This document shows positions 28,594-63,545 of a stretch of DNA of 64,000 bases, piece by piece (positions within the stretch are counted from its first letter, which is position 1; every line of letters begins with the position of its first letter). Origin of the DNA: Octopus sinensis (lineage: Eukaryota); assembly GCF_006345805.1 (NCBI RefSeq), contig NC_043015.1, positions 11,160,001-11,224,000 on the forward strand, read 5' to 3'. A model generated the notes under the pieces. The model searched no databases. It saw nothing but the letters and a program-made list of their open reading frames with translations, and was not told where the DNA came from. Both the position numbers and the translations under genes were made by a program.

Positions 28594-28644
28594 TTTGTCA
28601 AAATATTTTCGTCGCTTTGAGACCGCGACCTGTTCACTGACAAA
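28594..28644 (-). ncRNA. Hammerhead-like motif with swapped G3-C8 core pair (copy 1)
   Basis: Minus: TTTGTCA GTGAACA G GTCGC-GGTCTCAAA-GCGAC GAAA ATAT TT TGACAAA; lies in a repeat (28510-28645) also present at 63415-63550. Confidence 0.6.
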
Positions 28645-28840
28645 ATTATATATATATATATACTCGAATATCGGAGTTCCAGACTAGTATACTTTATTAA
28701 TAAAGCTGCAAAGACATCACAAAAACTGTTACACAGAGTTTCAGGTTCCCGAGCGATGGACAGTTTGTCCACCGAACGGAAATCTGAAACTCCGAGTAAC
28801 AGTATTTGTGATGTATTTGCATCTTTATTTGTATATATAC

Positions 28841-29163
28841 GTGATTTAGTGGTTAGGGCATTCGGCTCACGATTGTAAGGTCGTGTGTTCAATTCCCGGC
28901 GACGCGTTGTGTTCTTGAGCAAGACACTTTATTTCACTTTATTTCACTTTGTTCCAGTCCACTCAGCTGGCAAAAATGAGTAGTATCTGTATTTCAAAAG
29001 GGCCGGCCTTGTCACACTTTGTGTCAAGCTGAATTTTCCTGAGAACTACGTTAGGGGTACGCGTGTCTGTGGATTCCTCAGTCACTTGCACGTAAATTTC
29101 ACGAGCAGGGTGTTCCGTTGATCGTATCAGCTGGGACCCTCGTCGTCGTAACCGATGGAATGC
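28841..29163 (+). mobile_element. tRNA-headed SINE family C (CORE-like GTGTTCTTGAGCAAGACACTT domain)
   Basis: TAGTGGTTAGG..GTTCAATTCC head; homologous copies at 34141-34514 (-) and 38864-38968 (-). Confidence 0.85.
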
Positions 29164-29184
29164 TTATATGTATATATATATATA

Positions 29185-29335
29185 TATTTATATATGACGG
29201 GCTGGCTTCTTTCACTTTCCGTCAACTAAATGCATTCACAAGGCTTTGGTCGGCCGACGATATAGTAGAAGACATTTGCCCAAGGTGCCACGCAATGGGA
29301 CTTAATCCGGAACCATGCGTTTAGGAAGAAAGCTT
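29185..29335 (-). mobile_element. SINE family A, 5' half, diverged
   Basis: gacgggctggcttctttcactttccgtc...gacatttgcccaaggtgccacgcaatgggacttaatccggaacc. Confidence 0.8.
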
Positions 29336-29569
29336 CTTTATTTCATAAAATTGGCTATGCAGCCTTACAAAAATGAAGAAGCTGCGGGTTGGACAAAGAC
29401 ACAATGATAATGGAATGAAAAAAAATGGTTGGTGTGAGAAGCAGACAACACCCGCCGATTGTTGCTTTTCGAATACATTGTTCCCTTTTTGCCCAACAAA
29501 ACAAAAATGTGGTATTGAACCTCTTACCTCAATTCAAAGAATGAACGCAATCGTCCTTAGAAATTGAGG

Positions 29570-60347: not shown

Positions 60348-60895
60348 TACGAGGGTAACCAAGAGAGACCGGAGTTTTTCAATACTATTTTATCCACTTC
60401 GCTTTACCTATTTACATTTTGACGCCTTCAAATTGTTCTCCATTTGAAGCAATGTATCGGTCTAGAGGCGTTTTCCACTGTTGGAAGCAGTGCCGGAAAT
60501 CTTGCGAAGTGATGCCTTTTAACGCCTCCGTCCTTCTTTCTCTTTCTTCACTCTTCCACATCTGCAAATTCCGAAGTACCAGCAGCTTTCGTCACCAGTA
60601 GTGACCTTCGAACAATGTCCGGATGAATTTCCAACTGTTCTTTCAGTTCACGACTCGCATTCAGTCGTGATCGCTTTTGATCTTCTGTGAGTAGGCGAGG
60701 CACAAATTTTTCTGCAACTCCTCCCAGCACAATTCGCATTTCCTCGCAATTCTCAGTTCAATATTCGCAATTCACAAATCCTCGCTCAGAATTCGTCGGC
60801 AGGAGCTTCAGTACACACCAGTCATATCAACAAGTTCGCCAATTGTTCGGTGATGATCCACCAAGATCAGTTCATGATTTTTCATGTTGTTCGTA
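60348..60895 (-). mobile_element. Internally deleted mariner transposon relic
   Basis: TA+CGAGGG TIR-like end at 60348; minus peptides RTIGELVDMTG..SSCRRILSE, AEKFVPRLLTEDQKRSRLNASRELKEQLE and KGITSQDFRHCFQQWK..ASNGEQFEG. Confidence 0.85.
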
Positions 60896-61920
60896 TTCCA
60901 ATACGAACATTTCAGAATGTTTGGGTATCAATCAGAGACAGTGCAGAGGATTCAGAAAGAGTTGGATTAGACTAATGGTGATTACGAAAGGTACTGCAGC
61001 TCGGAGAACTCACTCCGATCGTTCTAATAAGAAAAAAAAAAAGCTCCTGAATTTGTTGATGAAATCCATGCCATGATTCACAGCGATCGCTTCATGCAAA
61101 TCAAATCCATCACCAGGGATTTTGTAGTGTATGAGTGTCTTATTAGGCAGAAAATATATAAAGGCTTAAGCTATTCCTCATACACGATGACAAGGGCCAA
61201 TGTTTATTCCAAGCCATCAAGGAGAAAAAAGAAAGACCGCGGAACAAACTAAACCATCGCCACTAACTGAATGCTTTGGTTTTCCTCAGATGAGAAGCAT
61301 TTCTGCCAGGATTAGCTAGTGAATACACACAACAACCGTTGGCTTGCCGTGTCCTCAAAACATGTACCGAGAGTGATAAAAATCAAACATCGAATCAACA
61401 TCGTAGTGTTTGGGGTGATCACTAGTGATGTCGACTTTATGCTTTCATTCATATTCGGCCTCACACTCAAGACGGTAGCCTACATCAAGTGTTTGGTGGT
61501 AGTAGTGCTGCCTTGGGTGAAGAGGGTAGCTGCTGAAAGATCCTATATCTAGCAACAGGACCCTGCATCGTGCTAAAACAGCTGTCAGCCAATTACTGCG
61601 ACCACTTCACCTGTAACATCCGGCCACCTAATTCCCCAGATTGCAACAGTCTTGATTACTTTATGTGGGGTGCAGTTGAGCGAGAAACCAACAAAACTTC
61701 AAGTAACACCTGAAGGCAAGGATTATGGCAGCATTGACCAACTTAAAGCAAGGAGACCGTCCAGAAGAGCTGCAGGGAATTCCGAAACCTTCTGGAGACC
61801 GTGGATGAAAGCAATGGCGAATCTTTAGTATTGCAAGACATTTTTTGAATTTTCATAAACATATCTATTCAAATGAGATGTCAGTGTAATTTTCCTTTTT
61901 GCATAATTTTGACGACAATA
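60896..61920 (+). mobile_element. Tc1/mariner (DD37D/maT-like) transposase relic
   Basis: WFSSDEKHFCQD; NTHNNRWLA; VVFGVITSD; QQD; PPNSPDCNSLDYFMWG; many stops and frameshifts. Confidence 0.85.
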
Positions 61921-63266
61921 TATTACGAATCATGCATATATATATTGGAAAAGTATGAAATCCTTGTTTCTTTCACTCTCTCTCTCTCTCTTTCTCTCTT
62001 TCCATATACATACACATAAACATGTATATATGAATATACATGTATCTATCTGTACACACCTATTTCACAGATATACTAATACATACATATATATATATAT
62101 ATATATATATATATATACGTACCCCTACACACACATATATATACAACCATGCGCATACACTCACACAAACATGTGCATACACACATTTATATATAAAAAC
62201 CTATATGTATACAAATACACATATAAATAGATATACATTTCTGCATACAAATACATATATGTATGTATATAGATGTATATGTGTATGTAGATATGTATGT
62301 GTTTATATATGTGTATGTGTTTCTATCAAGTGTTTTTATATGTGTGAGTATGCATATGTATATATGTGTGTATGTGTGTTTATATATAAGCATGTGTATG
62401 TATACATATAGAGATGCGTATGCATGTGTGTGTACGTATATGTATGTTTGTAGATACTGACACATGTGTATTTATATATTTATAATGTATATGGTATAGT
62501 TATAATAAATATACATACATATATATATATATATATATATATTATATATATATATATATTATATATATGTATGTATATACAGAGAGAAAGAGAGAGAGAG
62601 AGGTATGTATACTTTTTGCTTGTTATGTGTAGGGAAGTAAATATGTGAGCTAGCATGATCTCCCCAACCTCTCATCCAAACCAATATTAAAAAGCATTTC
62701 TATCAACGAAAATTTCTATCAAAAGATATGTACCTTACACCTCATTAACAACACCACCACAGACACACACCTAAAGCAGAAAACTACTAAGAGAAAGAAT
62801 TGGAAAACATCTGATCATTATATTTCTCACCAAAGGTTAACTATTCAAATGGCTTCATAAAACACTCCTTTAACACCTCACCACTTCCCAACTCCACAAG
62901 TATCTTGTTTTGACCATTCACCATCTTCTTTCAGCTCTTATTGATCAACACTCTCTCTCTCCAACATTGATTGACAACCCCCCATCTCGCCCGAAACACA
63001 CCCAAATCCCATATATAGAATCACAAAGCCCCACACCCTCAGATCTGTTTGACAACGAATCTCAGAAAGTTCTCCAGAAAAGTTAACATGGGATGTTTTT
63101 GTAATCTCCCCACCCAAGTTACCAAAGCACTTACTTGAGATGTACGAACTAAAGTGTAAAATGTATAGTATAAAAAATGTTTTAAAAAATAAATTAAACT
63201 GATTTTAACTACGAGTGAAATCATTCATTTTCTCCCTCCGTCTCCACTTCCTTTGGACATTGCTCT

Positions 63267-63301
63267 ATTTCTGAAGAAGAGCTTGGCTCGAAACGTTAAA
63301 T
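63267..63301 (+). ncRNA. Minimal type I hammerhead motif
   Basis: ATTT CTGAAGA A GAGC-TTG-GCTC GAAA CG TT AAAT; palindromic AACGTT stem III, GUU site. Confidence 0.65.
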
Positions 63302-63495
63302 CATATTTCCTTCCTTTCCTGAACGTCTGATAATACAGTTCTTGTACCCCGTCTTCGCGTTATCGTCTTTTCTTGATTGTTCTTCTTAGGATTCACCATG
63401 TATATATATATATACAATTGCAGCGTGGAAGGTGTTTATAAGCGATTTAAGAAACACACAAAAGCCGTTCGATTCACTTCAACATTTAAGTTTAA

Positions 63496-63545
63496 TTTGT
63501 CAAAGTATTTTCGTCGCTAAAATCCGCGACCTGTTCACTGACAAA
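63496..63545 (-). ncRNA. Hammerhead-like motif with swapped G3-C8 core pair (copy 2)
   Basis: Minus: TTTGTCA GTGAACA G GTCGC-GGATTTTA-GCGAC GAAA ATAC TT TGACAAA; stems I and II identical to 28594-28644, loop II different. Confidence 0.55.

Follow-up and report, generated by a model that had tools for sequence, protein, structure and literature searches.

The 64,000-nt stretch of Octopus sinensis DNA analyzed here (contig NC_043015.1, positions 11,160,001 to 11,224,000; "the window") is AT-rich (∼35% G+C), and is dense in (TA)n, (TG)n and (GATA)n microsatellites, repeats resembling short interspersed nuclear elements (SINEs), and retrotransposon remnants. It contains two copies of a short repeat element, both on the minus strand (copy 1, 28516–28644; copy 2, 63416–63545), in which a 50-nt module is laid out in the manner of a type I hammerhead ribozyme, with G3-C8 in the place of the C3-G8 tertiary pair of the hammerhead core. 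A remnant of a Penelope-like element (PLE) lies between the two copies, and has a hammerhead-like motif of its own downstream of its coding sequence.

Read along the minus strand, the module of copy 1 runs from 28644 to 28594 as UUUGUCA/GUGAACA/G/GUCGC-GGUCUCAAA-GCGAC/GAA/AAUAUU/U/UGACAAA. Its first segment is the 5′ strand of helix I (28638–28644; assigned from the fold and from the descriptor scan described below), which is followed by the core box G3 U4 G5 A6 A7 C8 A9 (28631–28637; descriptor scan), where the consensus is CUGANGA, and by an unpaired G (28630; read from the sequence) between A9 and position 10.1. The helix II hairpin, with loop GGUCUCAAA, occupies 28611–28629 (RNAfold) and opens with the pair G10.1-C11.1. 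Next are G12, A13 and A14, the palindrome A15.1-AUAU-U16.1, and U17 (28601–28610; read from the sequence), and the module ends with the 3′ strand of helix I (28594–28600; RNAfold). The copy 2 module (63545 to 63496, minus strand) has the same stems and core, including the unpaired G (63531), and differs only in loop II, which is GGAUUUUA, and in a single U to C substitution that changes the helix III stretch to AAUACU; its U17 is at 63503.

Both copies were recovered by the descriptor scan with the segments in type I order (helix I, core box, helix II hairpin, GAA, helix III, H17, helix I), and helix I (7 bp) and helix II (5 bp) make up the minimum-free-energy fold of each 50-mer (z = −2.5 and −3.4 relative to shuffled sequences; RNAfold). 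Both have U4, G5, A6, A9, G12, A13 and A14, an A15.1-U16.1 pair, and a base other than G at position 17. The consensus C3 and G8 are absent from both, being replaced by G3 and C8, which retain Watson-Crick complementarity. The sequence thus bears out a preliminary description of this DNA, which reported two minus-strand copies with an identical 7-bp stem I, GUGAACA box, extra G and 5-bp stem II, and with differing loops II. The cleavage site that it gave, 5′ of 28601, is one base off: the predicted scissile bond is 3′ of U17, which places it at 28601/28600 in copy 1 and at 63503/63502 in copy 2.

The repeat unit is ∼130 nt rather than 50 nt in length, as 28516–28644 and 63416–63545 align throughout with 88% identity (blastn and MAFFT). 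On the minus strand, the unit consists of the hammerhead-like module, a body of 78–80 nt (78 nt in copy 1) with an AC-rich end (...ACAAACACCGUCCACGCUACAAUUG), and then (TA)n, which continues on the low-coordinate side of both copies. Within the window the unit occurs exactly twice (blastn-short, and a search with a 22-mer allowing up to 3 mismatches), dispersed as singletons 35 kb apart without tandem arrangement. What had been called a repeat family therefore stands as two copies of a longer unit, and in the window as those two only. Because similarity must end where the shorter copy 1 ends, the common 5′ boundary is uninformative; the 5′ end of copy 2 may lie further upstream, and the shared boundary is not evidence for a defined 5′ end.

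Both 3′ ends abut (TA)n-type microsatellites, at 28450–28515 for copy 1 and 63398–63415 for copy 2, and a second run, (TA)9, abuts the 5′ end of copy 1 at 28645–28664. We orient the repeat on the minus strand because of this position of the (TA)n, which is also found at the 3′ end of a tRNA-derived SINE in the window. TA-microsatellite makes up only 6% of window positions, and the association of (TA)n with both repeat copies and with the PLE copy is for this reason not attributable to chance.

The PLE remnant is a 5′-truncated coding sequence with HTH_animal and GIY-YIG endonuclease domains (44417–45182, minus strand; tblastn with relatives from the protein database), and its 3′ untranslated region reaches ∼44104, where it ends in (TA)n. 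At 44255–44294 (minus strand), ∼120 nt downstream of the end of the GIY-YIG coding remnant and 16 kb from copy 1, is the motif AAGAAAU/UUGAAAA/GC-UGAAC-GC/GAA/ACCGGU/C/AUUUCUU, which resembles the minimal hammerhead motifs of PLEs and has U3-A8. Relatives of this element on other contigs retain the motif to different degrees. The independent Logan contig L003 (91%-identical PLE protein) has it at 1132–1171, differing only in loop II and position 17. The 71%-identical PLE of contig L004 has, at 1232–1268, GCUAA CUGACGA ... GAA ACCGGU U UUAGC, in which the core is the canonical C3-G8 one and helix I covaries. In contig L005 (61%-identical PLE; ∼985–1015), GAAACCGGU and a pairing helix I are kept, and the core is degenerate. 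The 3/8 pair therefore covaries within this PLE lineage, being U3-A8 in the window and L003 and part of a CUGACGA box in L004.

The window PLE copy and that of L004 end 150–190 nt past the motif in an AC-rich stretch that leads directly into (TA)n, and (TA)n terminates every PLE copy that extends to the 3′ end. The order of motif, 80–180 nt, AC-rich end and (TA)n is common to the repeat element, the window PLE remnant and L004. The motifs themselves share with the repeat module a 7-bp helix I, an N3-UGAA-N8-A box with complementary 3/8 bases, and GAA followed by an A-NNNN-U palindrome and H17. They differ from it in the identity of the 3/8 pair, in a helix II of 2–3 bp that follows the core box without an unpaired base, and in the GC-rich palindrome ACCGGU, which strongly favors a dimer. 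A MAFFT alignment of the five motifs is not structure-consistent.

Many of these features have been described for the minimal type I hammerhead ribozyme motifs (min-HHRs) in the pseudo-LTRs of PLEs (Cervera and de la Peña 2014; PMC4209133). In those motifs helix III has 0–2 bp and a palindromic 15.x–16.x stretch, and because of this reduced, palindromic helix III they must dimerize; an unpaired nucleotide between A9 and 10.1 and the pair G10.1-C11.1 are conserved, helix II is long, and most of the motifs occur singly in truncated elements (PMC4209133). The repeat module has the same open helix I, the same NUGANNA box followed by one unpaired base, G10.1-C11.1, and, in copy 1, GAAA followed by a palindrome of 4–6 nt where a real helix III would stand, an arrangement that would imply that the module acts as a dimer. 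It likewise occurs as single motifs in probably truncated retroelement copies at (TA)n or AT-rich sites, which are the preferred targets of PLEs (PMC8557442; PMC11167929). The extra G, which had been listed as a caveat, and the tiny, near-palindromic stem III are both hallmarks of published PLE min-HHRs (PMC4209133). A further parallel concerns the 3′ end. For the Poseidon PLE of Anolis, reverse transcription starts in an AC-rich stem-loop 111–118 nt past the beginning of stem II, and this start site sets the 3′ end of genomic copies (PMC11167929); in the repeat element, stem II begins ∼114 nt before the (TA)n junction. The repeat departs from the published motifs in having G3-C8, an A/U-only palindrome that is predicted to be unstable, no attached reverse transcriptase or GIY-YIG gene, and a helix II of 5 bp rather than 6–8 bp.

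The swapped core pair has precedents in the laboratory. In the Anolis Poseidon hammerhead, the single mutations C3G and G8C abolish activity, and the C3G/G8C double mutant is partly active (PMC11167929); the same exchange was, according to that article, also engineered by Martick and Scott (2006). A core with G3-C8 is chemically viable, since the double mutant partly restores cleavage. These constructs share the identical swapped pair with the repeat, and differ from it in being laboratory products of otherwise canonical ribozymes, whereas the repeat is a genomic sequence. As for natural variation, U3-A8 occurs in several hammerheads (PMC3088659) and covaries in one family of PLE min-HHRs (PMC4209133). 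We found no report of a natural G3-C8 hammerhead in the literature searched. The novelty proposed for the variant thus extends to the G3-C8 pair itself, but not to natural covariation at 3/8.

The type I hammerheads of metazoan retrozymes and satellites, such as those of newt and Schistosoma Sm-alpha (PMC7229834), are also similar in that helix III is weak, cleavage sometimes depends on a dimer, and the carrier is a short, non-coding retroelement. However, these are tandem repeats of 170–400 nt with canonical CUGANGA cores and loop-loop contacts (PMC7229834), whereas the repeat described here occurs as single dispersed copies with a swapped core and has no recognizable contacts between loops 1 and 2. 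The lack of tandem repeats and the non-canonical core do not fit a metazoan retrozyme.

The frequency with which such a motif arises by chance was estimated with a min-HHR descriptor, which specifies, in order, helix I of at least 5 bp, N3-UGA-N7-N8-A with a Watson-Crick 3/8 pair, 0–1 extra base, helix II, GAAA, 0–12 nt, U, a non-G base, and the 3′ strand of helix I. When helix II must have 4 bp or more and the 3/8 pair may be any Watson-Crick pair, the only matches on both strands of the window are the two repeat copies. Markov-chain simulations of the window give 0.047 chance matches per 64 kb, or 0.003–0.007 when the stems are as long as those observed. When 3/8 is left free and helix II may be as short as 2 bp, there are four matches, namely the two copies, a weak one at 13579–13635 and the PLE motif at 44255–44294. 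The expectation for this relaxed scan is 0.17 per window, and 0.01 if a palindromic helix III and a helix I of at least 7 bp are required. A random match is thus unlikely within one window.

We judge the chances to be evenly balanced that the 50-nt fold is a PLE-type minimal type I hammerhead motif, situated in the 3′ module of a retroelement and having a G3-C8 core. On this interpretation, the two loci would be short, probably 5′-truncated copies of the 3′ module of a PLE-type element, inserted at (TA)n microsatellites. The motif would stand at the head of the 3′-terminal module of an element transcribed on the minus strand, in a lineage that has G3-C8 for C3-G8 as its tertiary pair. A single motif presumably could not close helix III. 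Two of them, in a tandem transcript or in two RNAs, would pair through AAUAUU and exchange helix I strands to give a double hammerhead, and this would cleave 3′ of U17, at 28601/28600, probably slowly as in other PLE min-HHRs. Both copies are most likely decaying relics, copy 2 having lost the palindrome, and catalytic activity is doubtful for either of them.

A number of observations weigh against this interpretation, and the first of them concern the fold. Stem III is not predicted by RNAfold in either 50-mer, and in these models helix III would be present only as a potential intermolecular palindrome, which would comprise six A-U pairs in copy 1 and is disrupted in copy 2. In the nearest-neighbor model, copy 1 scores −25.4 kcal/mol as a double hammerhead and −27.6 kcal/mol as two monomers, so that its dimer is not favored, whereas that of the PLE comparator motif is strongly favored (−13.3 versus −6.0 kcal/mol). 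In addition, RNAalifold lengthens helix I by a G3·U17 wobble, which competes with the active fold and would be impossible with the canonical C3. The Rfam hammerhead models give no match to the repeat, either at the gathering score or at E ≤ 10, but this has little weight, because they likewise fail to recognize the PLE-linked motifs, even the one whose core is canonical, and so are uninformative for min-HHRs.

A second group of observations concerns ancestry and function. By tblastn there is no PLE coding sequence beside either repeat copy, and MAFFT detects no sequence homology between the repeat element and the 3′ ends of the PLEs compared. The (TA)n association does not by itself prove a PLE, as the tRNA-derived SINE in the window also ends in (TA)n. 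Published PLE min-HHRs cleave poorly (PMC4209133), and PLE insertion in vitro does not require hammerhead activity, nor do these motifs have a proven role in transposition (PMC11167929). The natural G3-C8 hammerhead that was originally proposed is therefore favored by its match to PLE min-HHRs, by the neighboring U3-A8 motif and by the C3-G8 relative, but disfavored by the missing PLE gene, the unstable helix III and the G3·U17 pair.

The comparison of the two copies is equivocal in the same way. Stem and core positions are unchanged (0/36), whereas 6 of the 15 positions in loop II and helix III differ and the repeat as a whole differs by ∼12%. Fisher's exact test gives p = 3 × 10⁻⁴ if the changes are independent, but 0.02–0.08 if those in loop II are counted as one or two events. 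In the downstream body, substitutions break a predicted stem, ACGGU/ACCGU, unlike stems I and II. None of the 12 predicted pairs varies between these two copies, and there is accordingly no compensatory change among them. The suggestion that the structure is conserved agrees with the unchanged stems and core, but two copies cannot prove the G3-C8 hammerhead reading.

An alternative that we consider somewhat unlikely is that the 5′ 50 nt form a hairpin nested in some unclassified repeat, such as a short retroposon, and that they neither descend from a ribozyme nor act as one. The stems might then form a hairpin that binds reverse transcriptase or another protein, or might be functionless, and the resemblance to the core (UGA...A, GAAA) would be coincidental. 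The core match requires only ∼11 fixed bases in AT-rich DNA, and the simulated rate per 64 kb corresponds to thousands of matches in a Gb-sized genome, such that matches are expected at genome scale or over a scan of many windows, and it was in such a scan that the repeat was found. Relaxed core descriptors likewise yield mostly false positives genome-wide (PMC6155905; PMC3088659). The lack of a compensatory change, a helix III that is predicted not to form and the absence of an Rfam match also speak for a coincidence. What a coincidence would leave unexplained is the concurrence of hallmarks that the descriptor does not require (the extra base, G10.1-C11.1, the palindrome and the 7-bp helix I), the presence in the same window of a genuine PLE motif of identical layout, and the PLE-like, (TA)n-terminated 3′ architecture of the repeat. 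Moreover, the window contains no match with a non-Watson-Crick 3/8 combination, although such matches are expected to be three times commoner by chance, and the relaxed descriptor, when applied to repeat-rich contigs of other animals (62 kb), finds 0 matches.

Searches for further copies of the repeat outside the window were made in several ways and yielded none. The pattern of stem II and its gap has 0 matches in metagenome contigs. For the 20-mer TGTCAGTGAACAGGTCGCGG, metagenome contigs and prokaryote genomes give one chance match each and viral contigs give none, and no match extends past the 20-mer. The peptide from an open frame across copy 1 yields no candidate in the protein database. 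The open reading frame (ORF) of the PLE leads to four relatives on ∼1-kb contigs, which are useful comparators, and none of them has the repeat element. Relatives of the ORF of a long interspersed nuclear element (LINE) in the window come from other animals and are mostly ∼50% identical (up to 72% on short contigs); neither the repeat element nor the SINE of the window was found at their loci.

A less probable reading, which we regard as improbable on balance, reverses the orientation of the element: it would be a tRNA-derived SINE on the plus strand, with its head at 28516–28580 and with the hairpin serving as the 3′ stem-loop for the reverse transcriptase of a partner LINE. There are an A-box-like string (TAGCGTGG) near nt 8 and a B-box-like string (GTTCGATTC) near nt 52, and their spacing is tRNA-like, though the strings are loose ones. 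A 6-bp stem, GUGUUU/AAAC(G/A)C, stays paired between copies through a change from G·U to A-U, and tRNA-derived SINEs do occur in this genome. However, ARAGORN predicts no tRNA, and Rfam has no match to a tRNA or other small RNA at E ≤ 10 on either strand. The (TA)n would stand at the 5′ end in both copies, whereas in the real tRNA-derived SINE of the window it is at the 3′ end, and only copy 1 has (TA)n after ...TGACAAA. Runs of T4 also occur inside the element.

A DNA-transposon derivative of the miniature inverted-repeat transposable element (MITE) type, with terminal inverted repeats and insertion at TA, is highly improbable and was rejected. In its favor, pairing of 5′ UUGUCAGUG with 3′ CACGCUGCAA is possible when copy 2 is folded as a whole element, and the flanks of both copies are TA-rich. 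Against it, the complementarity of the terminal 30 nt does not exceed that of shuffled sequences (172/500 score as well), there is no clear TA target-site duplication, and the low-side boundary merges into (TA)n.

Several other features lie near the two copies. The unique sequences just outside copy 2 (63377–63395 and 63554–63572) are imperfect inverted repeats, TGTTCTTCTTAGGATTCA compared with the reverse complement TGTTCTTTCTTAGATGCA, and an equal score is reached by only 2 of 500 shuffles. Copy 2 may thus be part of a larger inverted structure of the kind known from PLE insertions, or the similarity may be due to chance. About 55 nt from copy 1 is a 64-nt hairpin (28699–28762/28766–28829), with arms that are 84% complementary and a 3-nt loop. 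The segment 28683–28770 is similar to 42585–42672, and because one arm recurs in this way, we assign the hairpin to another repeat family. The block 28001–32000, just upstream of copy 1 in minus-strand terms, has a G+C content of 0.43–0.44 as compared with ∼0.33 around it, and the ORFs tested in this block have no Pfam match.

The tRNA-derived SINE family of the window has members at 8091–8263 (+), 8530–8700 (−), 17199–17314 (+), 29165–29338 (+) and 51801–51857 (−), one of which is 520 nt from copy 1 of the hammerhead-like repeat. As a reverse complement, the family has the sequence ...GGCTGTGTGGTAAG...GGTTCCGGGTTCAGTCCCACTGCG...GACGGAAACTGAAAGAAGCCCGTCGT. Every copy is followed immediately by (TA)n at its 3′ end, and some are flanked by (TA)n at both ends.

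Elsewhere in the window are two long, nearly perfect inverted repeats, at 9467–9622/9638–9793 (156 nt, 98%, 15-nt spacer) and 56330–56452/56740–56862 (123 nt, 100%, 287-nt spacer), which may represent foldback elements, MITE-like elements or errors of the assembly. Two remnants derive from retrotransposons without long terminal repeats (non-LTR). The one at 46977–47414 (+) is a C-terminal zf-RVT region, and its relatives, most of them ∼50% identical, are on large contigs from other animals; the one at 23477–24246 (−) is a typical C-terminal tail of LINE ORF2. Long trinucleotide and low-complexity arrays at 47836–49144 produce pseudo-ORFs of 300 aa on both strands that encode poly-I/N/D, and are inverted relative to a similar array at 46532–46685.

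With regard to the hammerhead-like module itself, it is possible, and somewhat short of probable, that this genome has a retroelement lineage with a G3-C8 hammerhead core, and that this is the first natural example of the full swap. The gain would be incremental, because both U3-A8 in nature and partial activity of an engineered G3-C8 core have been published before, and cleavage by PLE min-HHRs is poor (PMC11167929). If the family is real and active, it would supplement U3-A8 as natural evidence for a plain, swappable Watson-Crick contact at C3-G8, and would be a convenient natural substrate for a rescue experiment with single and double mutants. Taken with the U3-A8 and C3-G8 pairs of the neighboring PLE lineage, a G3-C8 lineage would mean that the 3/8 pair drifts among Watson-Crick alternatives in Penelope-type hammerheads, and that searches anchored on CUGANGA systematically undercount the hammerheads carried by retroelements.

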